A stretch of 64,000 nucleotides of DNA, taken from the IMG/VR virus record IMGVR_UViG_3300027668_000008, positions 242,715-306,714 of that record. One strand, written 5' to 3'. The notes beneath the pieces are model-generated. The model had not been told where the DNA came from and did no database searches. It saw nothing but the letters and a program-made list of their open reading frames with translations. The stretch's first letter is position 1, and every line of letters starts with the position of its first letter. Below are positions 34,794-62,338 of this stretch, in pieces. A program made the translations under genes and the position numbers.

Positions 34794-35156
34794 ATGAATA
34801 ATCTAGACACAATTTTCGATAAATCAAAGTATATCGCAGTTCAGCAAAACCAACTGCAACTTCTAAAAGAACTTATCAAAGAGAAGCTCACCGTTGGTCA
34901 CCATGGCGGACTGTTTTATATTAACAGTGAGCTTTTAAACTTTTTAGACTTACTAGAACGTTCAGACTATGACTCAGCAGTTGTAGACGACATGAACGGC
35001 AATCCCACTGAAATTCCAAACGTAAAAGAATTTAAAGCAACCTGCATGGAAAAGTATGCTCAAGAGCAGAACAATGCACTAGCAGAAATAAGACGACTAC
35101 GAAAAGCAAGGACAGTTCAAGAGTTAGTACAGTATGACTTCAACGAAGAAAACTAA
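34794..35156 (+). CDS. Hypothetical protein
   Basis: AGGA RBS; GGLFYIN.EL and DD.NGNP motifs; first gene after the promoter. Confidence 0.6.
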   Translation: MNNLDTIFDKSKYIAVQQNQLQLLKELIKEKLTVGHHGGLFYINSELLNFLDLLERSDYDSAVVDDMNGNPTEIPNVKEFKATCMEKYAQEQNNALAEIRRLRKARTVQELVQYDFNEEN

Positions 35157-35970
35157 TGGAATTCTTCTCTTTGCAAAAAACAATAAAGACTTTAATTATA
35201 TAAAACAAGCACAAGTCTCGGCTATGTTAGCCAAGCATTATCTAAATGTTCCTGTAGCAATAGTAACAAGTGTAGATGAATGTTCAGAAGACCTTTCGAT
35301 GTTTGATGTCGTTATTGATTGGAAAGCAAAAGTAGAAGAAATAAACCTCAGACCAATGTACGTGGACGGTAAGTTCAAGCCCGTGCAATGGCATAATCTC
35401 GATAGACTAACTGCATATGAGTTATCTCCTTTCGACGAAACAATCCTAATAGACACAGACTACTTAATACAAAATGATGTGTTAAACGCAGTATGGGGTA
35501 ATATAGAACCTATGCTAATGAATACGCATACACGGATACCTGCTAAACATCAACAACACGTTTACGAACTTGTTGTACAAGACGGTTTCCCTAAAGTACA
35601 TTGGTTTACAGTTATGTACTTTCGTAAGTGTCAAGCAACTGAAGATTGGTTTAATGTTGCAAAGTATGTTAGAGAGAACTACGACTTTTATAAAAATACA
35701 TTTAGAATTCCGTATCAATACTTTCGTAATGATATAACTGCCGCGATTGCAAGTCATTTAATTGGCGGCTTTAGAGATGACTATATTAAACCTTTGCCTA
35801 TTAGACAGATCAATAGTTTTAATATGGAAAAGATATTGCAGGTTAAAAAAGATTCAATACTAATAGAAACAGAAACAATACCAGTACTAATGAAGAATAC
35901 AAATGTACATATGCTGAATAAACAATCCATTGAAGAACACTACGATACATTTATGGAGATATATTCATGA
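35134..35970 (+). CDS. Glycosyltransferase-like protein (GT-A fold)
   Basis: SPFDETILIDTDY DxD motif; W.TVMYFRK; RND. Confidence 0.65.
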   Translation: MTSTKKTNGILLFAKNNKDFNYIKQAQVSAMLAKHYLNVPVAIVTSVDECSEDLSMFDVVIDWKAKVEEINLRPMYVDGKFKPVQWHNLDRLTAYELSPFDETILIDTDYLIQNDVLNAVWGNIEPMLMNTHTRIPAKHQQHVYELVVQDGFPKVHWFTVMYFRKCQATEDWFNVAKYVRENYDFYKNTFRIPYQYFRNDITAAIASHLIGGFRDDYIKPLPIRQINSFNMEKILQVKKDSILIETETIPVLMKNTNVHMLNKQSIEEHYDTFMEIYS

Positions 35971-36830
35971 GCAGAGGTTATTTTACATTCGCACAGTATA
36001 GTGAAAAGTTTGGGGACTATCCCCGAATGGCATATGCATTAGCATTAAGCCTTAAAGCAAGTCAAACAAAAGGGCCCAGTGACTTAACTGTCGGTATGAC
36101 AGAGGACGATTTGAAAAAGTTACCTAAGCATTATCTCGATGTTTTTAACGTAGAGATTATCCCCTGGACAGACGAAGCAATAATGCACAACTGGAAGTTG
36201 CAAAATGAGTGGAAGGCTTATCATATGACCCCGTATGATGAAACTATTAAACTCGATGCAGATATGCTCTTTACTGTTGACGTGGACTACTATTGGGAAA
36301 TAGCGAAAGCAAGAAACTTTCCGATAGCAGTCTGCGACACTATACATACTTTTAGAGATGTTGTAGGAGATGATTCATATTATAGACAAGGGTTTAAAGA
36401 TAATCAATTCTATAATGCCTACAGTGCTTTAACTTACTTTGCTAAAAGTAACGAAGCATTAACGTTCTTTAATCAAGTAGAAGACATTTATAGACATTGG
36501 GACAAATACGCAAACAACTTTATGCGAATTAATCCCAATGAAGTTGCATACACTGATGAAGTGTATGGCATGGCTATTAGATTACTAGGGTGGCAAGACA
36601 AAGTCAGACCACCAAAGTCATTTAGTTTTGTACATATGAAAAGTAAATGTCAAGGACTATTGGATTATTCAATAAGAGATGAGAACTGGACAGATTATTT
36701 AGACGGACAATATAATGAAGAAGGTATGTGGATTAATAACTATTACCAAACAAAGCCAGTGCATTATGTAATGAAGTCTTGGTGTACAGATGAATTAATT
36801 AAAACACTAGAAAAACAAGCAGGAGTATAA
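35967..36830 (+). CDS. Glycosyltransferase-like protein (GT-A fold), paralogue of the upstream gene
   Basis: TPYDETIKLDADM DxD motif; YSALTYF; TD; FVHMK. Confidence 0.65.
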   Translation: MSRGYFTFAQYSEKFGDYPRMAYALALSLKASQTKGPSDLTVGMTEDDLKKLPKHYLDVFNVEIIPWTDEAIMHNWKLQNEWKAYHMTPYDETIKLDADMLFTVDVDYYWEIAKARNFPIAVCDTIHTFRDVVGDDSYYRQGFKDNQFYNAYSALTYFAKSNEALTFFNQVEDIYRHWDKYANNFMRINPNEVAYTDEVYGMAIRLLGWQDKVRPPKSFSFVHMKSKCQGLLDYSIRDENWTDYLDGQYNEEGMWINNYYQTKPVHYVMKSWCTDELIKTLEKQAGV

Positions 36831-37399
36831 TGTCAGACTTTACAGATTTATCATTTAACCAGTTAATGGAAGAACACTTTGGTGCATTAAAACCGCAACA
36901 GCCTGAGACTAAGTTTTATCTATGGTTTGATTTGTTTGGTAAGATATTAACTATGTCTAATCAAACACAAGAGGAAATGAAGGACGAATCCTTTATTAAC
37001 ATTAGTAAAGAACAGTTTTTAGAGTTGCAAGATGTAAACTTAAATAACTTTATTGTAGATAAAGAAACAGAAACAATAGTCGATATCAGTGCCTCGTTTG
37101 CTAATAATAATTCTAAGTTAAATAAAATCGACCCTACGTTATGGAACAAAGATCGTTTAGTAACACTACAGTTTAATAAAGAAACAAGAACATTAAAAGT
37201 TAAAGTTAATACTATGTTACCTGCTAAAAGAAAATTATGGGTTGTTCCAAAAGGTAATTATATGATTATACTTGCTGAACTTGAATTGCATTCTGCAGTT
37301 GAAGAAGATATACACATTAAAGAATATAAAAACATTGATAGTATTGAGATTGTCACAGAGTCGGACTTGAATATCTTTACTGCTTTTAAGGAACTATAA
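36830..37399 (+). CDS. Hypothetical protein
   Basis: TAATG coupling with the upstream gene; no recognised motif. Confidence 0.6.
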   Translation: MSDFTDLSFNQLMEEHFGALKPQQPETKFYLWFDLFGKILTMSNQTQEEMKDESFINISKEQFLELQDVNLNNFIVDKETETIVDISASFANNNSKLNKIDPTLWNKDRLVTLQFNKETRTLKVKVNTMLPAKRKLWVVPKGNYMIILAELELHSAVEEDIHIKEYKNIDSIEIVTESDLNIFTAFKEL

Positions 37400-37400
37400 T

Positions 37401-38336
37401 ATGAAACAAACTTATCCAATGAGTGACTTCGACGTTGTATACATTAGTTATGACGAACCTAACGCAGAGAAGAACTGGGCAGACTTGTTAAGCAAGTGTC
37501 CATGGGCAAAACGTGTACAAGGTGTTAAAGGCTTTGATGCGGCACATAACGAAGCAGGCAGAATTGCAACCAAACGTCGACTAGTTACAGTAGACGGTGA
37601 CAATATAGTACACGCAGACTTCTTTAAACAAACTATTGAGATTGACGAAGAAGAACAAGCAGACTATATCTTTAGTTGGTGTGGACATAATATTATTAAT
37701 AGTTTAGCATACGGTAACGGCGGACTTAAACTATGGCCCAAGCACATTATTGAAAACATGAACAGTCATGAGAATGATGCAAGTGAAGACGGTGCTCATA
37801 GTGTAGACTTTTGTTGGATGCTAACGTATTACCAGATGGCAGATACATTTAGTGATGTATGTATTAACGCAACGCCTGAACAAGCATACAGAGGCGGCTT
37901 TAGAGAAGGTGTCAAGATGAGTTTAGATAAAGGTATACTTCCTCCACGTAACAAATTCCTAACACAAAATCATATAAAGAACTTACAACGTTTAAGTGTT
38001 TGGTGTAGTGTTGGTGCTGATGTGGACAACGGTGATTGGGCCTTACTAGGGGCCAGAGAAGCCGTATGCTTAACGAACTTAGATGATTGGGATCATACTC
38101 ACATCGCGGACTATGAATATATGCAACCGTTTGTTAAAGATAAATTAATTGCATATGCTGATACAGATAAACGTCAACAAGCATTTAAACACTTTGGTGA
38201 CAGATTAAGAAATGAACTACACTTTAGAGTTGCTGACTTGGATGCAGATGCAAGTATATGGTTTAAAAGTGTTTATCAAAACCCAAAACGTTTTGGCGTA
38301 ATGATAACAGAACAAGAAGCAGATAAAAAGAAATGA
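37401..38336 (+). CDS. Glycosyltransferase-like protein (GT-A fold)
   Basis: DVVYISYDEPNA, GVKGFDAAH, VDGDN (DxD), YGNGGLKL, GFREG.K; paralogue of 55208. Confidence 0.6.
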   Translation: MKQTYPMSDFDVVYISYDEPNAEKNWADLLSKCPWAKRVQGVKGFDAAHNEAGRIATKRRLVTVDGDNIVHADFFKQTIEIDEEEQADYIFSWCGHNIINSLAYGNGGLKLWPKHIIENMNSHENDASEDGAHSVDFCWMLTYYQMADTFSDVCINATPEQAYRGGFREGVKMSLDKGILPPRNKFLTQNHIKNLQRLSVWCSVGADVDNGDWALLGAREAVCLTNLDDWDHTHIADYEYMQPFVKDKLIAYADTDKRQQAFKHFGDRLRNELHFRVADLDADASIWFKSVYQNPKRFGVMITEQEADKKK

Positions 38337-38788
38337 TTCGTATAGCACACAGAGGTAACACAACAGGTCCTAATCCGTTAATGGAAAACAAACCTGAGTA
38401 CTTGCTACAAGCAGTTAACGATGGGTACGACTGTGAAGTTGATGTATGGCTTATAGATAATGAGATTTGGTTAGGGCATGACAGACCGGATTACAAAGTT
38501 GACAAAGAGTTTATCAGCAATCCAAGATTTTGGAATCATGCAAAGAATTTAAATGCATTACACTATATGTTAGAAAACAACATACATTGTTTTTGGCACG
38601 AGGGCGATGAGAGAACTCTAACTAGTAAAGGATACATATGGACGTACCCTTATAAAGAAGTAACTGAGAAAAGTATTATTTGTTTACAGCACGAGTTAGA
38701 TGTTGCTCCACAAGGGTGTTTAGGTATATGCTCCGATTGGCCTAACGATCAAAATGACGTTCACAACATCGAAGGATACCCTGTATGA
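38333..38788 (+). CDS. Short glycerophosphodiester phosphodiesterase (PLC-like) family protein
   Basis: IAHRGN, EN, EVDVW, LGHD and ICSD motifs. Confidence 0.75.
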   Translation: MIRIAHRGNTTGPNPLMENKPEYLLQAVNDGYDCEVDVWLIDNEIWLGHDRPDYKVDKEFISNPRFWNHAKNLNALHYMLENNIHCFWHEGDERTLTSKGYIWTYPYKEVTEKSIICLQHELDVAPQGCLGICSDWPNDQNDVHNIEGYPV

Positions 38789-39033
38789 AAATAAGATACT
38801 ACAAAGATATAGATGGTTTCAGATGGATAGGGTTTCTACTTGCAATGGCAAGTGCGTTTATACTATCCGGAGGTGATGCACATTTACAATGGGCTGGCTG
38901 GGGAATTGCTTTAGTTAGTTGTAGTATATGGGTATACATTGGATACCAGGATAGAGACACACCGAGAACATTAATGGAACTCATGTATTTAATATTAGCA
39001 ATACGTGGAGTTTGGAATTGGATTGGAGTATAA
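38785..39033 (+). CDS. Small three-helix membrane protein
   Basis: Three hydrophobic segments; ATGA coupling. Confidence 0.6.
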   Translation: MKIRYYKDIDGFRWIGFLLAMASAFILSGGDAHLQWAGWGIALVSCSIWVYIGYQDRDTPRTLMELMYLILAIRGVWNWIGV

Positions 39034-39034
39034 A

Positions 39035-39772
39035 ATGAAAATAGCAATCTGCCTAAGCGGACAATTAAGATCAAGTTGGAGAAAATGTATTCCAACATTT
39101 AAAGATATATTTAAAGAACATGAGGTACATTATTTTGGACACACATGGAAAACTAGAAGTGCTCCTAATTTTGTTAAAGTAACAAAAGGGATTAGTGACG
39201 TCGAAGAAGTTACAAACAATGAAGTACAAGAACTTCGTAGAGAACTTCCTGGTATTAATTTACTTGTACAAAAAGATATCGAATTTGAAGCAGGGCTTGA
39301 CCAAGCATTACATGATGTAAATTACCAAAGTCAATTCTATGGTGTAAAGGTAGCGGCACACTTAAAAAAGAGATACGAAATAGAAAACAATAGTAACTTT
39401 GATTTAGTTGTTAGATTACGTTGGGACACCATGTTTGATGAAGATTGGCAAGTACCTGAACCTAAGAAAGATACACTACAAGTTATACACTTAGGTTTCG
39501 AACAAGGTAATCACAGAAGTCGTTGTGGAGACTTATACTGGCAAGGACCAACAGATGTATATGATATTGCTTGTGATTTTTACAGTCACTTTCACAGACA
39601 TCCTAAAGAGTTTTTTGAAATGCCAGAGATGTTACACTACGGACCTGAACACGTTTTTATGTATTACTTAAAAGAATGTAACTTAAACTTGGAACAAATA
39701 TTTCCACCAATTAAGTTAGTTAGACCTAAACAAGAGCATATGACAGGCGGAGGCGATTATGAAACACTTTAA
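39035..39772 (+). CDS. Putative glycosyltransferase-like protein (KIAICLSGQ.R family)
   Basis: MKIAICLSGQLR, F.HTW, FDLVVRLRWD; start corrected to ATG 39035. Confidence 0.55.
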   Translation: MKIAICLSGQLRSSWRKCIPTFKDIFKEHEVHYFGHTWKTRSAPNFVKVTKGISDVEEVTNNEVQELRRELPGINLLVQKDIEFEAGLDQALHDVNYQSQFYGVKVAAHLKKRYEIENNSNFDLVVRLRWDTMFDEDWQVPEPKKDTLQVIHLGFEQGNHRSRCGDLYWQGPTDVYDIACDFYSHFHRHPKEFFEMPEMLHYGPEHVFMYYLKECNLNLEQIFPPIKLVRPKQEHMTGGGDYETL

Positions 39773-40523
39773 TACAGATACCGAACGTACTGCAATATGT
39801 TTTAGTGGCGAACTTAGAACTTTTAAAGTTGCGATGCCACGTATACTTGATTACTTTAGAGATACACCTGCAGACATTTATTGCCACACATGGACAACTT
39901 CCGGTGATAAACTTCATAAGAAACAAGACTTTGATTTACTAGAGGAAATGATTGATAACAGTGTACATAACTTTGTTGATATGGAATATCAAACATCTAT
40001 TAATCATGCAGGACCGTTTGGCAATATGCTTTACAGCATACAAAAGGCTAATTTTAATAAGTGTAAAACAGAAGTACGCAATAACTTTAGATACGACAAA
40101 GTAATTAAATGTAGGTACGATATGCTAGTGCCAAGTGGAAAAACATTCGGCAATAGACAAATAGAAGATAGAAGTATATACTACAGTATTGGCAACAGAG
40201 GATTAGTACCTAACGACTTTGGCAAGCATGGATTAAGTGATATTATATTCTGGGGCGACAGTCCTAGTATGGATATTGCTTGTGATACATATCGTTATTA
40301 TAATTGGGAAACATTCCCTCTAGCACTTAAACTGCAAAGTGGTTACACAATAGATCCAGGTGATAGTATGTTAAGTCCGGGTACATTAATATACCAACAA
40401 GCATTGAAACGAAATATTAAAATGGTACAAATTGTTCCACAGTTAATGGAAACACTTTGGAGAACCAATGTAGAAGATTTAGATCCAGATATACAATTTA
40501 ATGAAATAAAGGCGGCTTATTAA
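39759..40523 (+). CDS. Putative glycosyltransferase-like protein, paralogue of the upstream gene
   Basis: TAICFSGELR, YCHTW, YDKVIKCRYD, DIIFWG. Confidence 0.55.
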   Translation: MKHFNTDTERTAICFSGELRTFKVAMPRILDYFRDTPADIYCHTWTTSGDKLHKKQDFDLLEEMIDNSVHNFVDMEYQTSINHAGPFGNMLYSIQKANFNKCKTEVRNNFRYDKVIKCRYDMLVPSGKTFGNRQIEDRSIYYSIGNRGLVPNDFGKHGLSDIIFWGDSPSMDIACDTYRYYNWETFPLALKLQSGYTIDPGDSMLSPGTLIYQQALKRNIKMVQIVPQLMETLWRTNVEDLDPDIQFNEIKAAY

Positions 40524-41395
40524 TGCACCTATTAACAACAGGAGACAGTTGGACATTCGGAAGTGAGATACGTGACCCTGCTTTACCAGACACCGTAAGT
40601 GATTGGGATCCAGAGAATAATGAATACCGTATTCCTAAAATATGGCCTACTATGTTAAAAGATATGATTAAGGCAGATGACCTTACTAACATATCTTATC
40701 CAGCGGCAAGTAATGACAGGATCGTAAGAACAACAATGAGTTGGATTACTGAAAACTATATTAAGCCAGGATTAAAACCGGAAGGTGAACTATTTGTTGT
40801 AGTAGGATTAACAAGTCCTGAACGTAAAGACTTTTATTACAAAGATCCAGTAGATGAACATAACGGGTCTGGTTGGACTACTATATGGCCCAATCAAACT
40901 AACCACCCATATATGCAAAGAGGTATGCAACCTTTCTTTGATAACTACCGGATGTATTTGTGGAACGAAGAAGAATACATTAATCGTTATGTACAGCAAG
41001 TACTACAACTAGAAAACTTTTTTAAAGTACACAACATTGACTATATGTTCTTTCAAGCATTTTATAATGTAGACGACACGCAAATATCACAATGGGAAGA
41101 TAAAAACTACGTTAATAGTGAAACAGAAAAGATGACTGTTGGTAATGCTGACCCTCGTTGGAACTTTCATTACAACGGACAAAATGATGGCTGGTTGTGG
41201 GAACAAGTAGACAGTAAGAGATTCTACGGAAAAGATACTGCTCCGCATAGTTTCCATAGTTACATCACTGCACAGGATGTAACAGAATATAATACAAAAG
41301 TTATAACTGGTATGCACCCCAATCAGTATGGGCATATGTTATGGGCTAGAGAACTTAATAGATTCATAAGAGAGAATAAAGTATGCGAAATTTAA
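40523..41395 (+). CDS. SGNH/GDSL-fold protein
   Basis: GDSWTFG block I, ASNDRI, HPNQYGH block V. Confidence 0.7.
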   Translation: MHLLTTGDSWTFGSEIRDPALPDTVSDWDPENNEYRIPKIWPTMLKDMIKADDLTNISYPAASNDRIVRTTMSWITENYIKPGLKPEGELFVVVGLTSPERKDFYYKDPVDEHNGSGWTTIWPNQTNHPYMQRGMQPFFDNYRMYLWNEEEYINRYVQQVLQLENFFKVHNIDYMFFQAFYNVDDTQISQWEDKNYVNSETEKMTVGNADPRWNFHYNGQNDGWLWEQVDSKRFYGKDTAPHSFHSYITAQDVTEYNTKVITGMHPNQYGHMLWARELNRFIRENKVCEI

Positions 41396-42171
41396 TTATA
41401 ACTTGTGGAGATAGTTTTAGTAACGGCAGTGGGTTACCTGACCATGATTCATTTGAGAAGAGTTTCGGTGGACTAACTGCTGAGTATAAAAATGTAGAGC
41501 AAAAGGTATTAGGCAGAAGTGGTTGTTGTAACTTTACTATTTGGTTACAAGTTAAACACGCAGTTGAGCGAATGACTGTGGGCAACAACAAACCTTTTGT
41601 TATTATTAGCATGACTAATGCGGCTAGGACAATTTGGTTTAAGCCTGGGCAACAAAAGCCTATGGGAACAGAACCAACAATACAACATTTAAATTATGAA
41701 GACTATCCGCCATACGACAGGTACACACCTGCAGAATATAGAAGACCTATTCCTGTTACAACTGATAATAGTATGCAAAGTGAAACACTACAAAACTTAG
41801 ATAGTTTTTTTGATAGAGATGTTAAGGCAAAATGGGCACAATTTGAAAGACATGAACCAGATGCACGTCTAAGAGTATTAAGGGATTGGGTAGCAGACTT
41901 TTTTAGTTTTGATGTTAAGAATGAATACGACATTGGTATACTTGCACAAGCACATTTGTTAATGCGTACTAACGGCATACCACACGTTTTTATGGGACAC
42001 CAACCAGACTTCGAAAGACTTGTACCTGAAGAGAATTATGCAAACGTTGACTGGGGATATTTTAGTCAAACATACCCTGACACAAGAAACACAGGACATT
42101 GCGATTACGAAGGACATAGACAAGTATTTGAAATAATAAAACCCAAAGTAGACTTTCAATGGCATCGCTAG
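41383..42171 (+). CDS. SGNH/GDSL-fold protein
   Basis: GDSFSNG, GCCN, GHCDYEGH. Confidence 0.65.
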   Translation: MRNLIITCGDSFSNGSGLPDHDSFEKSFGGLTAEYKNVEQKVLGRSGCCNFTIWLQVKHAVERMTVGNNKPFVIISMTNAARTIWFKPGQQKPMGTEPTIQHLNYEDYPPYDRYTPAEYRRPIPVTTDNSMQSETLQNLDSFFDRDVKAKWAQFERHEPDARLRVLRDWVADFFSFDVKNEYDIGILAQAHLLMRTNGIPHVFMGHQPDFERLVPEENYANVDWGYFSQTYPDTRNTGHCDYEGHRQVFEIIKPKVDFQWHR

Positions 42172-55208: not shown

Positions 55209-55879
55209 TGTTTGATATTATTTTTATGAGTTATGAAGAACCTAATGCAGATAAGCATTGGGATTTAGTTAAGAAGAAGTTTCCGTGGGCAAGACGAAGC
55301 CACGGAGTAAAAGGATTACCAACTGCACACCAGGCGTGTGCAAAGATGGCTCGTACTGAAATGTATTATGTTGTCGAAGGTGACAATCATATTACAGAAG
55401 ACTTCGATCCAAGTTTTAAACCAGACAAGTACGGCAAGGATGCAGTATATGTATACCGAGCTCGTAACAGTGTTAATGACTTAGTTTATGGTTACAGTGG
55501 TATTAAATTATTCCCTACACAAAAGGTATTAGACGTTGATGTAGAAACAGTAGTAGACTTTACAACTGCTATTAGTACAAAGTTTGTACCTTACCCTGTT
55601 GTAGGAAGTATAGTACATTACGATACTGATCCTTTCAATACATGGAAGGCGGCATTTAGAGAGTGTACTAAACTAACAAGTAAGATTATACCTGGACAAA
55701 AGAACGACGAAGACGATGCCAGACTCAAGGTATGGACTACTGTTGGCAACGGACTATACGGTGACTACAGTACTGCTGGTGCAAGAGCAGGAGCAGAGTA
55801 TGGTAAGAACAATAACGATTACACAAACATTAATAATTGGGAATGGTTAAAGGAAAGATTTGAACAAAAAACAAATTAA
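55208..55879 (+). CDS. Glycosyltransferase-like protein, paralogue of 37401
   Basis: DIIFMSYEEPNA, GVKG...AH, VEGDN, YGYSGIKL, AFREC.KL. Confidence 0.6.
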   Translation: MFDIIFMSYEEPNADKHWDLVKKKFPWARRSHGVKGLPTAHQACAKMARTEMYYVVEGDNHITEDFDPSFKPDKYGKDAVYVYRARNSVNDLVYGYSGIKLFPTQKVLDVDVETVVDFTTAISTKFVPYPVVGSIVHYDTDPFNTWKAAFRECTKLTSKIIPGQKNDEDDARLKVWTTVGNGLYGDYSTAGARAGAEYGKNNNDYTNINNWEWLKERFEQKTN

Positions 55880-56567
55880 CTTTGTAGACGATAATGATTT
55901 ATTTGGTCGTATCGGTTTACTTACAGGCGATACATTATTCAACGACTTGCGTAAAGCGAGTGATAACTTAAACGCAGACTTTACCGATGCGTTAAGTTGG
56001 GGACAATTAAAAAGCAAACGTTGGTTAGTAGACGAGCTAGTTCGTACAGGTGAAGAATTAAGAACTGTATTTGTCTTAGGAGGATGGTACGGTACGTTAA
56101 GTGCTATGTTGTTTAATACTAATATGGTTATTCATTACATAAGAAGTTTTGATATAGACGAAGGATGTCAACCTATTGCTGATGCAGTTAATAATACCCA
56201 TGTACAAAACAACTGGAGATTCAAAGCAGTTATAGAAGATATGCATAATATAAACTATGACGCACACACTTGGAGTTGTTGGAGTACTAAAAATAATCGT
56301 TTAAGTTTTCCAACTACAGATAGACCCAATACAATTATCAATACCAGTTGTGAGCATATAGAAAACTTTAGTGAATGGTATGCAAAAATGCCTAAAGGTA
56401 AATTACTTGTATTGCAAAATAATAATTACAGTGAATTAGAAGAACACATTAATTGTGTTAACAGTGTAGAAGAGTTTGCTGAACAAACACCTATGAAGAA
56501 TGTTTTATTCTCAGGTGAACTAGACGTAGGCAAATACAAAAGGTATATGCGAATTGGAATTAGATAA
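55860..56567 (+). CDS. Class I SAM-dependent methyltransferase-like protein
   Basis: VFVLGGWYG motif I, SFDID motif II, INTSCEH. Confidence 0.65.
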   Translation: MNKKQINFVDDNDLFGRIGLLTGDTLFNDLRKASDNLNADFTDALSWGQLKSKRWLVDELVRTGEELRTVFVLGGWYGTLSAMLFNTNMVIHYIRSFDIDEGCQPIADAVNNTHVQNNWRFKAVIEDMHNINYDAHTWSCWSTKNNRLSFPTTDRPNTIINTSCEHIENFSEWYAKMPKGKLLVLQNNNYSELEEHINCVNSVEEFAEQTPMKNVLFSGELDVGKYKRYMRIGIR

Positions 56568-56775
56568 ATTATCTATTAGAGAACTACAGACAGAATCCGC
56601 TAGGGCTCTGGCTACTATGGATGCTACAAGTGTAAACATTCATCAGTTCAATAAACAAGCACATCATAATAGTTGGAACTGGTACAAAGCAGTTATCAAT
56701 TGGTATGTAGAACAATACGGCGACTTGCCTAGCAAGGTTGGCCCGGGTATGAAAGTCGAACTTAAATGTCAATAA
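56554..56775 (+). CDS. Hypothetical protein
   Basis: Overlaps both neighbours; TTG start. Confidence 0.5.
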   Translation: MELDKLSIRELQTESARALATMDATSVNIHQFNKQAHHNSWNWYKAVINWYVEQYGDLPSKVGPGMKVELKCQ

Positions 56776-56993
56776 AAATAATAAAATATGCTAGTGCCTG
56801 TTTTATTTTATTAGCAATGGTATTTCATGTTGCAGGTATTACACCTTGGAACAGTATACTACAAATGATAGGAGCAAGTGGTTGGATATATGTAGGCTAC
56901 AAATGGAAAGAGAAGGCTCTTATACTTAACTTCCTTCCACAATTTTTTATAATTATTCCAATGTTAATTTGGATATACTGGATAGCACAATGA
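56766..56993 (+). CDS. Small membrane protein
   Basis: Three hydrophobic segments; W.YVG..W pattern resembling 38785. Confidence 0.6.
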   Translation: MSIKIIKYASACFILLAMVFHVAGITPWNSILQMIGASGWIYVGYKWKEKALILNFLPQFFIIIPMLIWIYWIAQ

Positions 56994-57736
56994 AGATAAC
57001 AATAGCAGGATTTGGATATGTAGGTAAAGCAGTTGATATGTTCTTAAAACAATATCATACAACTCATGTAGTAGACCCAGCATTTAGATTAGATAAGTTG
57101 ACAGACATTAAACCAGATGCTATAATAATATGTGTAAGTACACCCCAAGGTGAAGATGGTAGTTGTGATGTTAGTAACGTATTAGATGTTTTAAATGACG
57201 TAAACAAACACACTCCTGTTTTAATTAAGAGTACAATTAGTCACGAAGGGTGGCTAACAATTAAAGAAGCACACCCGGACAAACAGATATGTTTTAGTCC
57301 AGAGTTTTTAAGAGCCAAGACTGCAAATCAAGACTTCGCAGGCATGGACATAATGTATCTAAGTAACGAACACTCTGTGTTCTGGTGTAACTTATTTTAT
57401 GCAATAAGACCTGACTTAACTTTTAAAGTTGGAACAGTAGAAGAATTAATAATTACAAAGTATATGCGTAATAGTTTCCTAGCAACTAAGGTTAACTTCT
57501 TTAATCAAGCATTTGATTTATGCCAGGCACTAGGCATTAACTTTGAAACTGTCAGACAATTTGTAACTGACGATAGTCGTATTGGAAGTGGACACACCAA
57601 AGTAACTGAAGACAGAGGATTCGGTGGGCATTGTTTTCCTAAAGATACAAACGCAATAATCAAAACTGCACAATTCAAAGGAGTTGATTTAAGTATCATC
57701 AGAGAAGCAGTAGAGTACAACAATAGGATCAAGTAA
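56990..57736 (+). CDS. UDP-glucose 6-dehydrogenase family protein lacking the C-terminal domain
   Basis: GFGYVG, CVSTP, IKST, SPEFLR, KY.RN.FLA.KV.FFN, D.RIG, GFGGHCFPKD; start ATG 56990. Confidence 0.85.
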   Translation: MKITIAGFGYVGKAVDMFLKQYHTTHVVDPAFRLDKLTDIKPDAIIICVSTPQGEDGSCDVSNVLDVLNDVNKHTPVLIKSTISHEGWLTIKEAHPDKQICFSPEFLRAKTANQDFAGMDIMYLSNEHSVFWCNLFYAIRPDLTFKVGTVEELIITKYMRNSFLATKVNFFNQAFDLCQALGINFETVRQFVTDDSRIGSGHTKVTEDRGFGGHCFPKDTNAIIKTAQFKGVDLSIIREAVEYNNRIK

Positions 57737-57737
57737 T

Positions 57738-58064
57738 ATGCTAGTAAATATAAATGACATTGGTGGATTAGTTATTAAAGACAATGAAACTTATACACTA
57801 AAAGACAATACTACATTAAATAATTTAGTTGTTAGTTCAACTGACTTAAAGCCTTATAAAAGCACTAACGGACATAGCCATGCAGGACAAGAAGAAGTAT
57901 ATTACTTTGTAAAAGGTTCGGGCACTATGTTCTTAAACAATGTACCTCGCTTTGTAACTGCAGGTGACGTTGTATTAATTGAAGATGGAGTACATCACAG
58001 AGTAACTTGCGGTCCTGAAGGACTATACTTTGTTTGTGTGTTCGACGGAAAGCGAAACCACTAA
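57738..58064 (+). CDS. Cupin-fold protein (sugar isomerase-like)
   Basis: GHSHAGQEEVYYFVKGSG...GDVVLIEDGVHH. Confidence 0.8.
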   Translation: MLVNINDIGGLVIKDNETYTLKDNTTLNNLVVSSTDLKPYKSTNGHSHAGQEEVYYFVKGSGTMFLNNVPRFVTAGDVVLIEDGVHHRVTCGPEGLYFVCVFDGKRNH

Positions 58065-58228
58065 TGTTTAAATGGTACGACTACTTGAGCATTTACTGGC
58101 ACAGTAAATTATTACACACAGGAATAGTAATGTGGATGCATGGTAGTTGGTCAGGTTTGCCTATAGTGATTAGTACATGGTGGACTTGGAGAGTATACGA
58201 AGAAGTAAGAAGGAAATCACTATTATGA
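58064..58228 (+). CDS. Small Trp-rich hydrophobic protein
   Basis: TAATG and ATGA coupling on either side. Confidence 0.5.
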   Translation: MFKWYDYLSIYWHSKLLHTGIVMWMHGSWSGLPIVISTWWTWRVYEEVRRKSLL

Positions 58229-58668
58229 AAACAGGAATAACATTTAGTACATTTGATTTACTACACGCAGGTCATGTTGCAATGCTTCGTGATGCTAAAC
58301 AGCAATGCGATTATCTTATTGTAGGCTTACAAAGTGATCCAACACTTGATAGATTTACTAAAAACAAACCTACACAAACAATGTTTGAAAGATACCTACA
58401 ACTTAAATCAGTTAAATATATTGACGAAGTAATTCCGTATCAAACTGAACAAGACGTAGAAGACATTCTCGAAACATTAACACCCAACATACGAATTATT
58501 GGCGAAGAGTATAAAGAAATGGACTTCACTGGTAGAGATATTTGCAAACGGTTGGACATTATGTTATACTTTAATAAACGAGAACACAGGTTCAGTACAA
58601 CTGACTTGCGTGATAGAGTATGCACGGCACAACAACAACGGGAAGAATACCCTTTCGATATTAAATAG
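58225..58668 (+). CDS. Cytidylyltransferase, glycerol-3-phosphate cytidylyltransferase (TagD)-like
   Basis: FDLLHAGH (HxGH), ER, R.HRFSTT; start ATG 58225. Confidence 0.85.
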   Translation: MKTGITFSTFDLLHAGHVAMLRDAKQQCDYLIVGLQSDPTLDRFTKNKPTQTMFERYLQLKSVKYIDEVIPYQTEQDVEDILETLTPNIRIIGEEYKEMDFTGRDICKRLDIMLYFNKREHRFSTTDLRDRVCTAQQQREEYPFDIK

Positions 58669-58677: not shown

Positions 58678-59763
58678 GTGTATAAGATAACAGACATAGA
58701 CACAGTGCATTTAGAGATTACGCAGAAGTGTCAAGCGGCTTGTCCTATGTGTGACCGTAACATGAACGGAGAAGGCATTAACCCTCATATTAATTTAGAT
58801 GAGTTAACACTAGAAGATGTTAAAAAGATATTTACTATTGATTTTGTTAAGCAACTAAAGTCAATGTTTATGTGTGGCAACTTAGGTGATCCTATTGTTG
58901 CTACTGATACACTTGAAGTATTTAAATACTTTAGAGAACACAATCCAGACATTTGGTTAAGTATGAATACAAATGCAGGAGCACAAAAGGAACAATGGTG
59001 GCAGGAGTTAGCACAAGTGTTTGCTAATAAAGGTCATGTTATCTTTAGTGTGGACGGATTAAAAGACACAAACCATTTATACAGACAAGGTGTTAGTTGG
59101 AATATTGTTGAACGCAGTATGAGAAGTTTCATTAGTGCAGGCGGTAAAGCACGTTGGGACTTTTTAATATTCGAACATAACCAACATCAAGTAGACGAAG
59201 CACGGGCCATGGCAGAGAGTATTGGCTTTGAAAGTTTTGTTAGTAAGAAGACAGGACGATTTGTAACTGCAACTACTGAAAAGAAAGACGAACACCAAGC
59301 AAAGAATCGAAAGGGCGAAGACAGTACAGCACTAAAGAAACCTGACGATAAATATTTGAACAACGCATTAAAACAACAAGACGACTTAGTCAACAAACAC
59401 GGTAGTATGGATCAGTATTATGATACTGCAAAGATTATTTGTAAGGTTTCAAATAAGACTACCCGAAGTTTATATATTAGTGCCGAAGGGCTGGCACTTC
59501 CTTGTTGCTGGACTGCTGGACGTATGTACAAGTGGTGGCATAAAGATCCTAAAAAGGAAGAACCTATTTGGGACTTCATTGAACGTGCAGGTGGCAAAGA
59601 TAAAGTAGATGCCAGGCACGGGTTAAGCAAAGTGTTTGACACAGGTATATTCAACGACATCGCTAACAGTTGGAGTAAGCCAAGTTGCAAAGATGGGAAG
59701 TTAAAAGTTTGTGCTATGAAGTGCGGAGCAGAGTTCGATCCATTTGCGGAGCAGTTTAAGTAA
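58678..59763 (+). CDS. Radical SAM enzyme with C-terminal SPASM/twitch-like domain
   Basis: CQAACPMC, CGNLGDP, FSVDG; C-terminal C..PCC...C...C. Confidence 0.85.
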   Translation: MYKITDIDTVHLEITQKCQAACPMCDRNMNGEGINPHINLDELTLEDVKKIFTIDFVKQLKSMFMCGNLGDPIVATDTLEVFKYFREHNPDIWLSMNTNAGAQKEQWWQELAQVFANKGHVIFSVDGLKDTNHLYRQGVSWNIVERSMRSFISAGGKARWDFLIFEHNQHQVDEARAMAESIGFESFVSKKTGRFVTATTEKKDEHQAKNRKGEDSTALKKPDDKYLNNALKQQDDLVNKHGSMDQYYDTAKIICKVSNKTTRSLYISAEGLALPCCWTAGRMYKWWHKDPKKEEPIWDFIERAGGKDKVDARHGLSKVFDTGIFNDIANSWSKPSCKDGKLKVCAMKCGAEFDPFAEQFK

Positions 59764-60920
59764 TGAAAAAATTTGTTTATGTAGAAGATATTAAACGTAT
59801 TGAGTTTGGTATTACTAGTCTGTGTAATGCAGGTTGTCCAATGTGTGCAAGACATATTGATGGAACTAGTATTGTTAAACCAGACTTACCTATGCGAAGT
59901 ATATCAATCGATGACTTTATAAAAATTACAGAAGACATAGGTCCACATACAAGAAAGATCAACTGTAACCTTTGTGGTACAATTGGTGATCCTATAGCAC
60001 ACCCGCAGATAGAAAAGATAATTAACTACGGTGCAGAGAACTATAAAGTTGTTACTCTTGACACTAACGGTAGTTTAAGAGATACAAAATTTTGGACTCG
60101 GTTAGGTGAAAAACATCAACAGGTTATTAAACAAGGTAATGGCAGACGAGGTATAGAAGTTAACTTTAGTATAGATGGTTTAGAAGATACTAATCAACTA
60201 TATCGTATTAACACAGACTACAATAAGATTATAGAGAACGCAACAGCATTTATTAACGCAGGTGGCAAGGCTATATGGAAGTTTATTATATTTGAACACA
60301 ATCAACACCAAGTTAACGAAGCAAAACAAAGAGCTGATGATATGGGCTTTACAGAATTCTCGACACTAGTAAGTAGCAGGTTTAGATTAAACACAGGCGA
60401 AGCAGTTAGTGTAGATAGTTATAAGAAGAAAGTGAATGCACCAAGTCGTGAGAAAGTAGAACAAACTCAAGACAAGCAATTCAACCTTAAAGCAAGTGAT
60501 AAGTACAGTAACAAAGAAGTTGCAGACTGGTATATCAAATTTGCTAAACCAGGCAATCAAGAGAAAGAACTAGCAGAAGCAACATATGACATTAACTGTA
60601 AGAGTATTGATAAAGGTTACTTGTACATAGACGAAGTTGCTAGGCTCTGGCCTTGTTGTCACTTTCACGGTGGACTAACAGGACACACGTTTAGAAGGTT
60701 CTGGGCAGACATTGAAAAGCAGTATGGTAAAGACTTTAACAGTTTACGAACAAGCACAATAAACGAACTATTAGATCACGAGTACTTTAAAGAGTATCTT
60801 CCTAATAGTTGGACCAATCCACAAGAATACAAACTTTGTAAGAAGTGTGTTCAAGTGTGTGACAAAAACAAAGGCATGAATAAAGATGCACAACAAAAGG
60901 CATATACGGAACTAAGATGA
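59763..60920 (+). CDS. Radical SAM enzyme with C-terminal SPASM/twitch-like domain, tandem paralogue
   Basis: CNAGCPMC, CGTIGDP, FSIDG, FEHNQHQV shared with the upstream gene, PCC...CVQVC. Confidence 0.85.
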   Translation: MKKFVYVEDIKRIEFGITSLCNAGCPMCARHIDGTSIVKPDLPMRSISIDDFIKITEDIGPHTRKINCNLCGTIGDPIAHPQIEKIINYGAENYKVVTLDTNGSLRDTKFWTRLGEKHQQVIKQGNGRRGIEVNFSIDGLEDTNQLYRINTDYNKIIENATAFINAGGKAIWKFIIFEHNQHQVNEAKQRADDMGFTEFSTLVSSRFRLNTGEAVSVDSYKKKVNAPSREKVEQTQDKQFNLKASDKYSNKEVADWYIKFAKPGNQEKELAEATYDINCKSIDKGYLYIDEVARLWPCCHFHGGLTGHTFRRFWADIEKQYGKDFNSLRTSTINELLDHEYFKEYLPNSWTNPQEYKLCKKCVQVCDKNKGMNKDAQQKAYTELR

Positions 60921-62338
60921 AAAATAAATTACCAAGTAAAACATTTTGTGCTCTACCATGGATGCACTTGTCAAGTAGACCTAACGGACATATGAGAGTA
61001 TGTTGTACTGCTAATGCTAGTAGTGTGCAAAGTGCAGACTCGAGTATTAAAGCAGGAGGTGGCGAAGTTGGCGTACTAAAGAACGACGATGGTAAACCAG
61101 CAAACTTTAATACCACAAGTTTAAAGGAAGCATGGAACAATAGTTATATGCGTAATGTAAGACTGCAAATGCTTGCCGGTGAAAAGCCTGCTAGTTGTTT
61201 AAAATGTTTTAAGGAAGAAGATGCCGGACACGCCAGCAAACGTATGTGGGAAACAGAGTACTGGGGTAATAGATTTAACCTAGAAGAGATTGTTGCAGAG
61301 ACAACAGCAGATGGTAGTGTACCTCCTAAGATTCGTTACATTGATTTGCGTATGGGTAGCAAGTGTCAACTTGGTTGTGTTATGTGTAGTCCACATGATA
61401 GTAGTGGCTGGGTTAAGGATTGGAAGAAGATGTATCCTACACTAGAGAATGCTAAACTTAAAAACAGTATGCAATGGGATAGTAAAGGACAAGTAGACGG
61501 TGCTACATACAATTGGCATATGAAGAACCCAAAGTTTTGGGAAGAGTTGTATGAACAAATTCCACATATGTATCAGTTATACTTCGCAGGCGGTGAAAGT
61601 ACTGTTATCGAAGAACACTACACACTGTTAGAAGAAGTTGTACGCAGAGGATACGCACATAAAATTGAATTACGTTACAACAGTAACGGAGTAGAGATGC
61701 CACAAAGACTATTTGACTTATGGGACAAGTTTAAACGTGTTCGTTTTCATTATAGTATTGATGCGGCAGGTGAACAAAATGATTATATTCGTTACCCTAG
61801 TGTATGGGAACACCAAGTAAAACAATTTCATTTACTAGATAACACTGGACCTAATGTAGAAGTTACTACTGCTACAACTATAATGGCATTAAACATTTAT
61901 TATATTCCAGAGTTTCTTAAATGGAAACTAGCACAAAACTTTAAAAAGATTAATATATGGCCCTTAGGAGCAGGAGGTATTAATATGCACTTTGCTTATT
62001 GGCCACCACAACTAAATGTTAAAGTATTACCACTCGAGTTTAAAGCAGAAGTTACACGCAAGTATAAAGAAGAGTTTATTCCTTGGATGAAAGAAAACTG
62101 GCAACAGTTTACTGGAGTTGAACAAGCAGGTGTTGATTATGATACTTGGTTAGACAGTACATACGGAGTTAAACGTTTTGAGAATCTAGTTAACTTTATG
62201 AATGCAGAGGACTGGAGTGAACGTTTACCTGAGATGAAAGAATGGGTAGAGAAACTAGAACAGCATCGTGGACAAGACTTTGCTAAAGCATTTCCTGATA
62301 TGGTTAACATATTCGACAGCATAGAACATAAGGAGTAA
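60917..62338 (+). CDS. Radical SAM enzyme with N-terminal twitch-like domain
   Basis: FCALPW..VCC...CLKC, CQLGCVMC, AGGE, SID, YIRYP. Confidence 0.85.
   Translation: MKNKLPSKTFCALPWMHLSSRPNGHMRVCCTANASSVQSADSSIKAGGGEVGVLKNDDGKPANFNTTSLKEAWNNSYMRNVRLQMLAGEKPASCLKCFKEEDAGHASKRMWETEYWGNRFNLEEIVAETTADGSVPPKIRYIDLRMGSKCQLGCVMCSPHDSSGWVKDWKKMYPTLENAKLKNSMQWDSKGQVDGATYNWHMKNPKFWEELYEQIPHMYQLYFAGGESTVIEEHYTLLEEVVRRGYAHKIELRYNSNGVEMPQRLFDLWDKFKRVRFHYSIDAAGEQNDYIRYPSVWEHQVKQFHLLDNTGPNVEVTTATTIMALNIYYIPEFLKWKLAQNFKKINIWPLGAGGINMHFAYWPPQLNVKVLPLEFKAEVTRKYKEEFIPWMKENWQQFTGVEQAGVDYDTWLDSTYGVKRFENLVNFMNAEDWSERLPEMKEWVEKLEQHRGQDFAKAFPDMVNIFDSIEHKE

Follow-up and report, generated by a model that had tools for sequence, protein, structure and literature searches.

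A composite 27.5-kb glycan-biosynthesis island beside the tail-fibre genes of an uncultured T4-like jumbo phage, with the fibres as inferred target

Introduction

We found that an uncultured 307-kb T4-like jumbo phage carries a 27.5-kb block of about 39 sugar-activating, sugar-tailoring and sugar-transferring genes, built around an old module that sits after the tail-fibre genes across its clade, which points to, although it does not demonstrate, decoration of the phage's own fibres. The window analyzed is a 64,000-nucleotide stretch (positions 242,715 to 306,714) of IMG/VR record IMGVR_UViG_3300027668_000008, and the block occupies positions 34794-62338 of it. A sequence-only reading had described roughly 40 co-oriented genes at this place, listed their enzyme classes, and proposed that the phage builds an unusual glycan in the cytoplasm, most simply to coat virion proteins such as the adjacent Ser/Thr-rich fibres. 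The observation itself held, and nearly every enzyme class on that list was recovered, whereas the interpretation was only partly supported. What is new here is the composite structure of the island, the association of its RuBisCO-like protein (RLP) with a recurrent cassette, and a conserved sigma-70-type promoter element fused to a terminator hairpin at its start.

Results

The block comprises 37 plus-strand ORFs of at least 60 aa, to which independent public gene calls add a 40-aa and a 55-aa ORF in the two gaps. Of 36 junctions, 30 overlap (7 ATGA-type and 5 TAATG-type), only two gaps exceed 20 nt (143 and 151 nt), and GC content is even at 0.34-0.39 with no break. The block follows T4-like gp5, gp25 and gp6, a 4178-aa virion protein, and four fibre-like genes at 29372-34683 (725, 220, 490 and 305 aa), which have PHROGs tail-fibre-like C-termini, a match to phrog_11259, and a Ser plus Thr content of 18-29%; the gene at 31551 is the conserved anchor of the clade. 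An assembly artefact is excluded, because the identical RLP is on 24 contigs from independent ENA and JGI assemblies, and the three loci compared carry the same gene order. The right boundary is uncertain, however, because the window (offset 242714 between window and contig) ends at the contig end.

A composite element at 34713-34786 marks the start of the island: TTGACA-17-TAAAAT (11/12 in a promoter scan) is followed at once by a hairpin with a 17-bp stem and a U run, resembling a PeSL (fold z-score -6.9). The same arrangement, with different hairpin sequences, occurs in relatives, and this is the only such element in the 64 kb on either strand. In contrast, four structural genes carry a T4-late-like GAATAAATA motif, which lies 30-36 nt upstream of 29372 and 32267.

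The first genes belong to what we call module A. A 120-aa protein (34794-35156) has no family hit but has syntenic homologues in distant loci and in the cultured Ralstonia phage RsoM2USA (ORF354). It is followed by two paralogous GT8-like GT-A glycosyltransferases with DxD (35134-35970, with DTD at residue 107, and 35967-36830), whose family profile matches glycogenin at E 2.9e-7 across the DxD region; the second also has a weak Mannosyl_trans3 hit and is 41% identical to RsoM2USA ORF352. A 189-aa protein (36830-37399) has no family hit, although its position is conserved in close relatives. The protein at 37401-38336 is a predicted GT-A-fold transferase with a conserved DGD motif and invariant D65/D67; its AF2 model has pLDDT 90, but its Foldseek PDB matches to GT-A enzymes (TarP, SunS, TarS and PBCV-1 A64R) are weak (E 3e-4, TM 0.3-0.45), and its BFVD hits are mostly viral glycosyltransferases.

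Next comes a mini GDPD-like protein of 151 aa (38333-38788), often a member of the RLP cassette, with invariant H6, R7, E18, N19, E35, D37 and H49, whose profile matches GDPD 7e0v at E 8.6e-5 over the N-terminal 55 aa only and which is found in at least 7696 metagenomic clusters. A small hydrophobic 82-aa protein (38785-39033) has only a sub-threshold PnuC/NMN_transporter hit (E 0.0013). Two paralogous GT6-like GT-A-fold transferases follow (39005-39772 and 39759-40523; paralogue E 5e-11, same family alignment), and the model of the first (pLDDT 86) matches BoGT6a and ABO GTA/GTB at E 4.5e-7 and TM 0.5-0.56, with 222 hits at E <= 1e-3. Of the five SGNH-like proteins, three are DUF6071 members, at 40523-41395 (Pfam E 3e-24, GDS at residue 7), 42872-43666 (E 1.5e-10, with public gene calls starting at 42896 or 42911) and 44517-45224 (weak GDSL_2 hit, GDS at residue 13). 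The fourth (41383-42171) has an invariant block I GDSF and two invariant histidines near the C-terminus in its family alignment, without a strict DxxH motif, and the fifth (42159-42920) is a GCS variant with invariant FGCS..G and RDxMH.

The sugar-1-phosphate nucleotidyltransferase at 43810-44532 (Pfam NTP_transferase; PDB 4evw at 2.6e-10; GAGSR motif) is the obligate partner of the RLP, lying next to it in 53 of 53 viral and 27 of 28 cellular loci, and it is fused to the cupin in two loci (L056 and L061). A 94-aa protein without hits (45188-45472) is found only in close relatives. The small cupin of the cassette (45469-45798; invariant H43, H45 and E50), whose profile hits cupins including a 113-aa mannose-6-phosphate isomerase, is present in 38 of 53 viral loci. 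The RLP (45816-46952), of a form IV-like phage clade and found in 194 viral stretches, matches Pfam RuBisCO_large at E 4e-35 and PDB 2cwx at 4e-33; K175/K177, K201/D203/E204, S379 and G403/G404 are kept, while H294 is replaced by Q and K334 by Y.

Downstream lie a PMM-like HAD phosphomutase or phosphatase (47104-47814; Pfam PMM E 9e-20, DVDGT motif) and an N-terminal-twitch radical SAM enzyme (47814-49172; NCBIfam NF033640 E 7e-98, CNFKCMYC), 39% identical to RsoM2USA ORF349. An orphan 415-aa protein (49132-50379) gave no Pfam, PDB, PHROG or NCBIfam hit and has only 41 environmental homologues, none annotated. A 380-aa nucleotide-sugar dehydrogenase family protein (50376-51518) has the UDPG_MGDP_dh N and central domains, with TIGR03026 at 139 bits, below the cutoff. 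The protein at 51499-52023, read earlier as a 2OG oxygenase, is more weakly supported than the other classes: this cupin-fold oxygenase-like assignment rests on a sub-threshold Asp_Arg_Hydrox hit (E 0.002) and an HxD...H pattern, of which PPHAD and a distal H are conserved in a distant homologue. The DegT-family aminotransferase-like protein (51983-52681; Pfam E 2.7e-18) is short (232 aa) but has an SF...K....G.GG Lys motif, and because its short length is conserved down to 53% identity it is not a recent pseudogene. The StrB1-like amidinotransferase (52678-53682) matches PDB 1bwd at E 1.4e-82 over its full length, its C-terminal GGGHHC segment aligning with GGGFHC of StrB1, and is followed by a NodU/CmcH-type carbamoyltransferase (53649-55208; Pfam Carbam_trans_N and _C, phrog_1601).

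Module A then resumes with a GT-A-fold paralogue of 37401 (55208-55879; BLASTP E 4e-26), which is 40% identical to RsoM2USA ORF348 and elsewhere adjacent or fused to homologues of 37401 and 55860. The protein at 55860-56567 has a predicted class-I SAM-dependent methyl- or aminopropyl-transferase fold (profile match to spermidine synthase and methyltransferases, E 7.5e-4; conserved GGWYG and DID motifs). A 73-aa protein without family hits (56554-56775) is the best conserved of the module in distant loci, at 60-80% identity where its neighbours are at 30-50%. Next come a small membrane protein with two hydrophobic segments (56766-56993; DUF6552, E 3.4e-8), a short, 255-aa nucleotide-sugar dehydrogenase family protein (56969-57736; Pfam, TIGR03026 at 129 bits), a Cupin_2 protein (57738-58064; E 1.8e-9), and a Trp-rich 64-aa ORF of uncertain coding status without homologues in the loci compared (58034-58228). 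A cytidylyl/adenylyl-transferase resembling RfaE domain II or TagD (58177-58668; CTP_transf_like E 4e-15, HAGH motif) has NCBIfam hits that are all below equivalog cutoffs. The island closes with three radical SAM enzymes, two of them paralogues recognized by Pfam (58678-59763, with CQAACPMC and a module A member in distant loci, and 59763-60920) and one of the N-terminal-twitch type (60917-62338; NF033640 E 9e-127, CQLGCVMC); all four such enzymes of the island have CxxxCxxC.

Within the block there is no large membrane protein, transmembrane enzyme, priming transferase, flippase, polymerase or ABC domain, only four small (64-82 aa) hydrophobic proteins, and seven proteins gave no fold or family assignment (34794, 36830, 38785, 45188, 49132, 56554 and 58034).

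Discussion

The sequence-only reading named two computational findings that would have refuted it, failure of the GT-like proteins to model as GT folds and lack of conserved co-occurrence in relatives, and neither was borne out: these proteins model or align as GT-A folds, and co-occurrence is strong. The whole block is conserved at 50-96% amino-acid identity in the relatives' loci L004-L006 and L046, and largely at 24-77% in L008, L009 and L038. One could envision a loose collection of unrelated auxiliary genes, as module content varies among relatives and a PeSL-like element suggests cassette shuffling (PMC4122927). However, junctions overlap, order is conserved over wide divergence, components are fused elsewhere (NTP-transferase with cupin; GT-A with GT-A and the methyltransferase fold), and the activation, tailoring and transfer functions complement one another, so this possibility is very remote. 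We thus conclude that the block is a dedicated, conserved glycan or glycoconjugate pathway run by soluble enzymes.

The earlier reading treated the block as one unit, but it is a composite. Module A comprises 34794-37401, 55208-56775, the radical SAM genes 58678-62338, and 47814, whose homologue is the module A radical SAM in RsoM2USA. It is contiguous and follows the fibre genes in distant loci (26-47% identity). In a scan anchored on fibre-region gene 31551 (at least 585 viral stretches), 43 of 46 informative loci have the GT8 pair a median 1.3 kb after 1-5 fibre paralogues, whatever the fibre copy number. The same eight-gene module (ORFs 354-347) sits after gp5, gp25, gp6, the giant protein and structural genes in RsoM2USA (PMC8504454), and thus tracks the virion genes rather than one host. 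In the present phage, about 17 kb of donor-supply genes are inserted inside module A, including the RLP/nucleotidyltransferase/cupin/GDPD-like cassette, its GT6-like transferases, and the amino-amidino-carbamoyl branch.

Conservation across phages of very different hosts argues, by inference, for a phage-intrinsic acceptor. The best relatives of the GT8 profile are glycogenins, which glycosylate protein, and hits of the 37401 model include PBCV-1 A64R and a mycobacteriophage Che8 glycosyltransferase. This support for the fibres is indirect: synteny is circumstantial and could reflect a stable insertion site in a conserved structural region, and the high Ser/Thr content invoked earlier is ordinary for fibres and not evidence by itself. 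Simple co-regulation with the fibres is also disfavoured, because the island is separated from the fibre operon by a strong hairpin with a U run and has its own sigma-70-type promoter rather than the late-type motif, which fits early expression as well as, or better than, co-expression with fibres.

Alternatively, the phage could make unusual NDP-sugars and soluble GT-A enzymes that act on the host's own lipid-linked LPS, CPS or teichoic intermediates, with host flippases and ligases exporting the product, altering the cell surface during infection, for example for superinfection exclusion or grazing avoidance. In cellular genomes the RLP cassette lies within a heptose/Kdo LPS-core cluster (Pelagibacter), next to LicD (Legionella), or next to GT2 (Nonomuraea and Turneriella), and a census of 136 neighbours shows Bac_transf, Wzy_C and Polysacc_synt_2. 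These surroundings suggest that its product is a glycan building block, but they fit host-surface remodelling as well, as do the promoter and the four small membrane proteins, and LPS and cell-wall gene clusters of the cyanomyoviruses P-SSM2, S-SCSM1 and S-SCSM2R are interpreted in this way (PMC12801897). However, the window has no priming transferase, flippase, polymerase or ligase, and the constant place of module A in phages as far apart as a Ralstonia phage and aquatic phages is hard to reconcile with host-specific acceptor glycans. We therefore consider this reading unlikely but still open.

Less likely still is DNA hypermodification, in which a tailored, partly cationic sugar would be attached to modified bases to protect against restriction or aid packaging, as T4-type phages do with glucose or arabinose. 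The T4-like lineage, a start of the island that looks like an early-type promoter, the positive charge that amidino groups would bring, and the diversity of virus GTs that hypermodify DNA (Pyle et al. 2024, as cited in PMC12619734) are compatible with it, but within the 64-kb window there is no base-hydroxymethylase or other base-modifying gene and no match to T4-type DNA glucosyltransferase families, and the island is tied to the fibre genes rather than to replication or nucleotide-metabolism genes.

Similarly doubtful is a free or peptide-bound specialized metabolite, made during infection and acting on the host or on competitors, either an aminoglycoside-like pseudo-oligosaccharide or a glycosylated, radical-SAM-modified small protein with 56554 as substrate. 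The aminoglycoside-like flavour noted earlier is real, given the StrB1-like amidinotransferase, accompanied by the DegT-like protein, the NodU-type carbamoyltransferase and the twitch-domain radical SAM enzymes; the 37401 model also hits the S-glycosyltransferases SunS and ThuS among others, and 56554 is unusually conserved and lies next to radical SAM genes. However, we found in the block no cyclitol synthase domain (no DHQ_synthase-like or inositol-phosphate synthase hit), exporter or self-resistance gene; the transferases are GT-A rather than the GT-B type known from aminoglycoside pathways; 56554 has one Cys and no leader/core-like features; and the amidino branch is present only in the closest relatives, so it is an add-on and not the core function.

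What the analysis establishes is thus the presence of at least three activating enzymes (nucleotidyltransferase, cytidylyl/adenylyl-transferase and PMM-like mutase), the tailoring set, six GT-A-fold transferases, the absence of membrane export or polymerization machinery from the block, and the ancestral place of module A directly after the fibre array throughout a large jumbo-phage clade, with donor-supply genes inserted in it in the present phage. The chemistry, the transcription of the island from its own promoter, and the acceptor are inferred. In this view the RLP would isomerize or enolize a ketose monophosphate, the cupin and nucleotidyltransferase would convert the product to an NDP-activated donor, and the amidino and carbamoyl branch would add cationic and carbamate groups. 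Our best reading, to which we assign a probability of only about 0.45, is that the phage synthesizes nucleotide-activated, heavily tailored sugars in the cytoplasm and transfers them to an acceptor of its own, probably the fibre proteins encoded just upstream, on which the GT8-like and GT-A enzymes would build the glycan before or during assembly.

Results

Genomic context and gene content

The stretch analysed is the last 64 kb of the 306,714-bp IMG/VR contig IMGVR_UViG_3300027668_000008, such that window position x equals contig position x + 242714; genes are named here by their start positions in the window. Comparison with PHROGs identified T4-type gp46/gp47, the gp55 late sigma factor, gp5, gp25 and gp6, but gp6 is at most 37% identical to that of any cultured phage, the best matches being the jumbo phages Phosso, Atu_ph07, SCTP-2, RaK2 and PA5oct. 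Between gp6 and the fibre genes lies a single ORF of 4178 aa (16804-29340) that matches virion structural protein phrog_10938 (E 5e-301); the Ralstonia phage RsoM2USA has a 2541-aa counterpart, ORF361, that was detected in virions. The genes that follow it encode fibre-like proteins by comparison with PHROGs. A megablast search with 20 kb of the sequence against 50,697 GenBank phage records gave no match. This clade may or may not correspond to the "moraphage" lineage, described as aquatic jumbo phages of up to 307 kb with four core GT orthogroups (PMC12619734).

The sequence-only reading had described a block of roughly 40 co-oriented, mostly overlapping genes at 34794-62338 without a recognisable flippase, polymerase or ABC exporter, and that description held. 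We found 37 ORFs of at least 60 aa on the + strand, of whose 36 junctions 30 overlap and only two leave gaps exceeding 20 nt; these two gaps hold small ORFs of 40 and 55 aa (43681-43803 and 46949-47116) annotated by public gene callers, the first of which is very basic (Lys/Arg-rich). GC content shows no break, and searches for tRNAs and Rfam families returned nothing. The identical RuBisCO-like protein (RLP) occurs on 24 contigs read from independent ENA and JGI assemblies, and the three loci compared have the same gene order, so the block is not a chimera. Its right border is less certain, as the window ends at the contig end: a 175-aa protein of unknown function (phrog_11543) at 62876-63403 has homologues of 40-48% identity near RLP cassettes in two other phage loci and in a Sphingobacteriales MAG (L031:17600, L049:18768, L164:8315), so the island may extend to at least 63403.

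Direct family hits were obtained for an NTP_transferase (43810), RuBisCO_large (45816), PMM (47104), two nucleotide-sugar dehydrogenases (50376 and the short 56969), DegT (51983; E 2.7e-18), a carbamoyltransferase (53649), Cupin_2 (57738), CTP_transf_like (58177), radical SAM enzymes (58678, 59763 and 60917) and three DUF6071 proteins. The products of 47814 and 60917 are N-terminal-twitch radical SAM proteins (NF033640; E 7e-98 and 9e-127, respectively), and all four radical SAM enzymes carry CxxxCxxC. We considered that the short DegT (232 aa) and the short dehydrogenase (255 aa) were broken genes; for DegT, which has its lysine motif, this was rejected because the length is conserved in relatives down to 53% identity. 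No in-frame stop or split gene was found in the block.

In contrast, searches of the first 9 kb with Pfam, PHROGs and NCBIfam gave almost nothing, and family alignments built from related loci, together with structure prediction, were needed. Proteins 35134 and 35967 match glycogenin (GT8) across the DxD region (E 2.9e-7). The 37401/55208 family has a conserved DGD motif, and its AF2 model (pLDDT 90) hits only GT-A enzymes, albeit weakly (TM 0.3-0.45), whereas the model of the 39005/39759 family (pLDDT 86) matches GT6 enzymes at TM 0.5-0.56; profile searches of the 37401 and 39005 families against PDB sequences gave no hit. Proteins 41383 and 42159 carry SGNH block motifs, which makes five SGNH-like proteins in all, 55860 has a predicted class-I methyltransferase/spermidine-synthase fold, and 51499 keeps an HxD...H triad. 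No fold or family assignment was obtained for seven ORFs (34794, 36830, 38785, 45188, 49132, 56554 and 58034), of which 38785 and 58034 are small and hydrophobic and 49132 remained an orphan after dedicated searches.

No enzyme of the island has a transmembrane segment. Of the features expected of a Wzx/Wzy- or ABC-dependent surface polysaccharide locus, nucleotide-sugar synthesis genes and glycosyltransferases are present, but no initiating polyprenyl-phosphate sugar transferase (Bac_transf or Glycos_transf_4), no multi-TM protein and no flippase, ABC exporter, polymerase or ligase was found among the ORFs searched. The only hydrophobic proteins are four of 64-82 aa scattered through the island (38785-39033, 56766-56993, 58034-58228 and 62345-62542), for which transport, anchoring or holin-like roles could be considered; one has a sub-threshold PnuC-like hit and one is DUF6552. 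Because 38785 and 56766 share only a short WxYxGY-like stretch, a SemiSWEET/PnuC-like transporter is unsupported.

The product of 52678 is a full-length relative of the streptomycin enzyme StrB1 (PDB 1bwd, E 1.4e-82), its C-terminal GGGHHC segment aligning with GGGFHC of StrB1, and, as in the streptidine branch of streptomycin biosynthesis, a DegT-family aminotransferase and a dehydrogenase lie next door. It also matches SxtG and glycine amidinotransferases, but at E-values 34-39 orders of magnitude weaker, and as no other component of such pathways is present that reading was dropped. A specialised metabolite of the streptomycin or butirosin type, or a modified peptide, is not excluded but appears improbable: none of the 37 ORFs has a domain of a cyclitol-forming enzyme (2-deoxy-scyllo-inosose synthase or inositol-phosphate synthase), although the orphan 49132 is without assignment, and no kinase or phosphatase set and no self-resistance or export genes were recognised.

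A composite island

In close relatives the whole block is conserved (50-96% identity), but in distant relatives (26-47%) the order is fibre genes, 34794, 35134, 35967, 37401, 55208, 55860, 56554, 58678, (59763), 60917, so in the window the stretch 38333-55208 (about 17 kb) is an insertion inside an older module, which we call module A. Homologues of 37401, 55208 and 55860 are even fused elsewhere, giving proteins of up to 864 aa. The 73-aa product of 56554-56775, which belongs to no known family, is 60-80% identical across loci where neighbouring enzymes are only 30-50% identical, and it always sits just before radical SAM gene 58678.

We next anchored a scan on the conserved fibre-region gene 31551, which has at least 585 viral stretches. 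In 43 of 46 informative loci, the GT8 pair lies a median 1.3 kb after the last of 1-5 fibre paralogues, and in most of these it is followed by the GT-A gene, often with twitch radical SAM genes. The cultured Ralstonia phage RsoM2USA (MG752970; PMC8504454) has the same eight genes (ORFs 354-347) in the same order and place, downstream of gp5, gp25, gp6, a giant protein and structural genes, at 32-41% identity. It lacks the RLP cassette and the amidino and carbamoyl branch; all eight genes are annotated as hypothetical, and no glycan analysis of this phage has been published.

The RuBisCO-like protein cassette

The RLP (45816) has 194 relatives in IMG/VR, whereas a tblastn search of the same 50,697 phage records gave no match. 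Among viral loci with at least 5 kb on both sides, the nucleotidyltransferase is adjacent in 53 of 53, the GDPD-like protein is present in 43 of 53 and the cupin in 38 of 53. In two phage loci (L056:8414-9472 (-) and L061:8850-9962 (-)) the nucleotidyltransferase and the cupin are fused into one protein of 353-371 aa, a Rosetta-stone hint that they act on the same substrate. An apparent RLP-cupin-NTP-transferase fusion in Azospirillum (locus L170) was rejected as a spurious long ORF in another frame after the frames were checked by hand.

The RLP is homologous to the RuBisCO large-subunit catalytic domain (Pfam E 4e-35) and keeps K175/K177, the P1 phosphate site and the Mg site K201/D203/E204, with K179, D181 and E182 invariant in 31 sequences. 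Because H294->Q and K334->Y, losses of residues needed for carboxylation read from the alignment to 2cwx, are both invariant, it is not a carboxylase. In comparison with characterised RLP subgroups (MtnW, DeepYkr and apiose-pathway types), the best PDB match is a form III enzyme (4e-33), while the RLPs 4nas, 3nwr and 2oek score 1e-26 to 2e-25. Jaffe et al. (2018, PMC6389311), who reported divergent, form-IV-like RLPs of this kind on large myovirus contigs from many environments, placed the phage RLPs as a separate clade and left their function open.

The mini GDPD-like protein (38333) keeps all catalytic motifs of the glycerophosphodiester phosphodiesterase superfamily (HR...EN...ExD...H), invariant in 40 sequences, and its profile matches that superfamily at E 8.6e-5. 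However, it is only about 150 aa long, the family spans 137-197 aa rather than the about 240 aa of a complete TIM-barrel, and only the first 55 aa or so align. The family is very abundant in metagenomes, with at least 7696 clusters at 90% identity; among the 120 listed hits none has a Pfam assignment, and one source names a member as a glycerophosphoryl diester phosphodiesterase.

A genome scan found the same RLP clade in cellular genomes, including a Candidatus Beckwithbacteria MAG (L137), the cellular lineage reported by Jaffe et al., and the nucleotidyltransferase is again adjacent in 27 of 28 loci. In cultured or complete genomes the pair lies inside a heptose/Kdo LPS-core cluster (Pelagibacter sp. 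Uisw_094, L265), next to LicD (Legionella nautarum, L264), in a run with GT2 (Nonomuraea rosea, L266) or next to GT2, radical SAM, PMT_2 and UbiA genes (Turneriella, L267), and a census of 136 neighbours points the same way. In Nonomuraea it lies among integrase and transposase genes, which suggests mobility. We infer that the cassette makes an NDP-activated glycan building block from a ketose phosphate, although this chemistry rests on sequence and gene context alone. These cellular contexts would also fit remodelling of the host surface during infection.

Regulatory signals

The 110-nt spacer before 34794 holds TTGACA-17-TAAAAT (11 of 12 matches), and a 17-bp-stem hairpin with a U run starts inside the -10 hexamer. 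The arrangement recurs in seven distinct upstream sequences from relatives, with several different hairpin sequences, and at the same border in 8 of 42 distant loci, but is unique in the window. In arrangement it resembles the PeSL elements of T4-like phages (PMC2839356, PMC4122927), in which a sigma-70-type early promoter is joined to a stem-loop at the edge of a variable cassette; however, there is one copy in 64 kb rather than many similar copies mediating recombination. By inference, a transcript started at this promoter would lack most of the 5' arm of the hairpin and should read through, whereas upstream transcripts should stop there. The promoter consensus conserved here (34713-34741) is of the TTGACA/TATAAT type, which suggests a proteobacterial-type host RNA polymerase rather than a Bacteroidota one; this bears on membership of the moraphage lineage, which is predicted to infect Bacteroidota (PMC12619734).

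Four structural genes (6372, 13319, 29372 and 32267) instead carry a (C/T)GAATAAATA(C/A) motif 30-36 nt upstream (at 6336, 13285, 29337 and 32237, + strand), which is probably the gp55-dependent late promoter of this phage; all 11 ATAAATA sites in the window are on the + strand. The T4 late promoter TATAAATA itself is not enriched (2 found, 8.8 expected), while the looser NATAAATA lies before four structural genes. The island therefore looks like a separate, probably early, transcription unit, which again would suit host-surface remodelling. However, one perfect TATAAATA at 42878 lies 17-32 nt before the publicly called starts of gene 42872, so late transcription of distal parts cannot be excluded.

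Discussion

The evidence firmly supports a dedicated glycan pathway of soluble enzymes, but the proposal of the sequence-only reading that the product coats the adjacent fibres is only partly supported. Gene content, recognisable GT folds, the composite architecture, the linkage of module A to the fibre genes and the partnership of the RLP with its nucleotidyltransferase were established by the sequence and structure comparisons, whereas the acceptor, covalent attachment of any glycan to capsid, tail or fibre proteins, the chemistry of the RLP cassette and the behaviour of the promoter are inferred. We favour a phage-intrinsic acceptor, most simply the fibres, because module A tracks the fibre genes across phages with very different hosts, although we hold this only tentatively (probability about 0.45). 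Host-surface remodelling is a less likely alternative, with support from the cellular contexts of the RLP cassette and from the early-type promoter. DNA hypermodification seems improbable but is not excluded; no base hydroxymethylase pathway or DNA glycosyltransferase was found within the 64-kb window, which leaves out the other 243 kb of the genome.

Large phages are known to carry glycan gene clusters, but their targets are almost never established. The LPS and cell-wall gene clusters of the marine T4-like cyanophages P-SSM2, S-SCSM1 and S-SCSM2R (PMC12801897) likewise comprise tens of clustered glycosyltransferase and nucleotide-sugar genes in large T4-like phages, and their target too has not been shown by experiment. 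The present island differs from them in its enzyme set (an RLP cassette, a StrB1-like amidinotransferase, four radical SAM enzymes, five SGNH-like proteins and only GT-A folds) and in its position after the fibre genes, which is fixed across a clade. Virion glycosylation by virus-encoded GTs is reported in mycobacteriophages (Freeman et al. 2023, cited in PMC12619734), and the chlorovirus PBCV-1 enzyme A64R (PDB 2p6w) and the mimivirus fibril clusters are further examples. As in those systems, soluble virus-encoded GT-A enzymes lie next to structural genes, and the hits of the 37401 model include A64R and a Che8 GT, but the similarity is at fold level only (about 10-13% identity). Moreover, mycobacteriophages use one or two GTs and host sugars, whereas here a full predicted donor-supply pathway is present; the glycoprotein itself remains hypothetical here.

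What is new, then, is the composite architecture, the fibre-locked core module, the RLP cassette and the StrB1-type amidino branch. One could go further and envision that the RLP, its obligate nucleotidyltransferase partner, the small cupin and the mini GDPD-like protein form a previously unrecognised, very widespread route to an NDP-activated sugar or polyol-phosphate unit for glycans, which would be a new biochemical role for the RuBisCO superfamily, and that this phage plugs the route into an ancestral fibre-glycosylation module to make a cationic, carbamoylated coat on its own fibres. The evidence does not rule this out, but we consider it unlikely as it stands.

These results nevertheless make the question testable. 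A GT8/GT-A/radical SAM module is a near-universal neighbour of the fibre genes in a big clade of environmental jumbo phages and is also present in a cultured phage, RsoM2USA. The phage RLPs, whose function has been open since 2018, can now be placed in a specific hypothesis, a nucleotide-sugar cassette with defined partner enzymes and cellular counterparts in Pelagibacter and Legionella glycan loci that lends itself to assay in vitro. A StrB1-type amidinotransferase in a phage glycan pathway points to guanidino-sugars on a virus or on an infected cell, which have not, to our knowledge, been described. If the fibres are the target, glycan coats could shape host range, stability and recognition of abundant aquatic phages.
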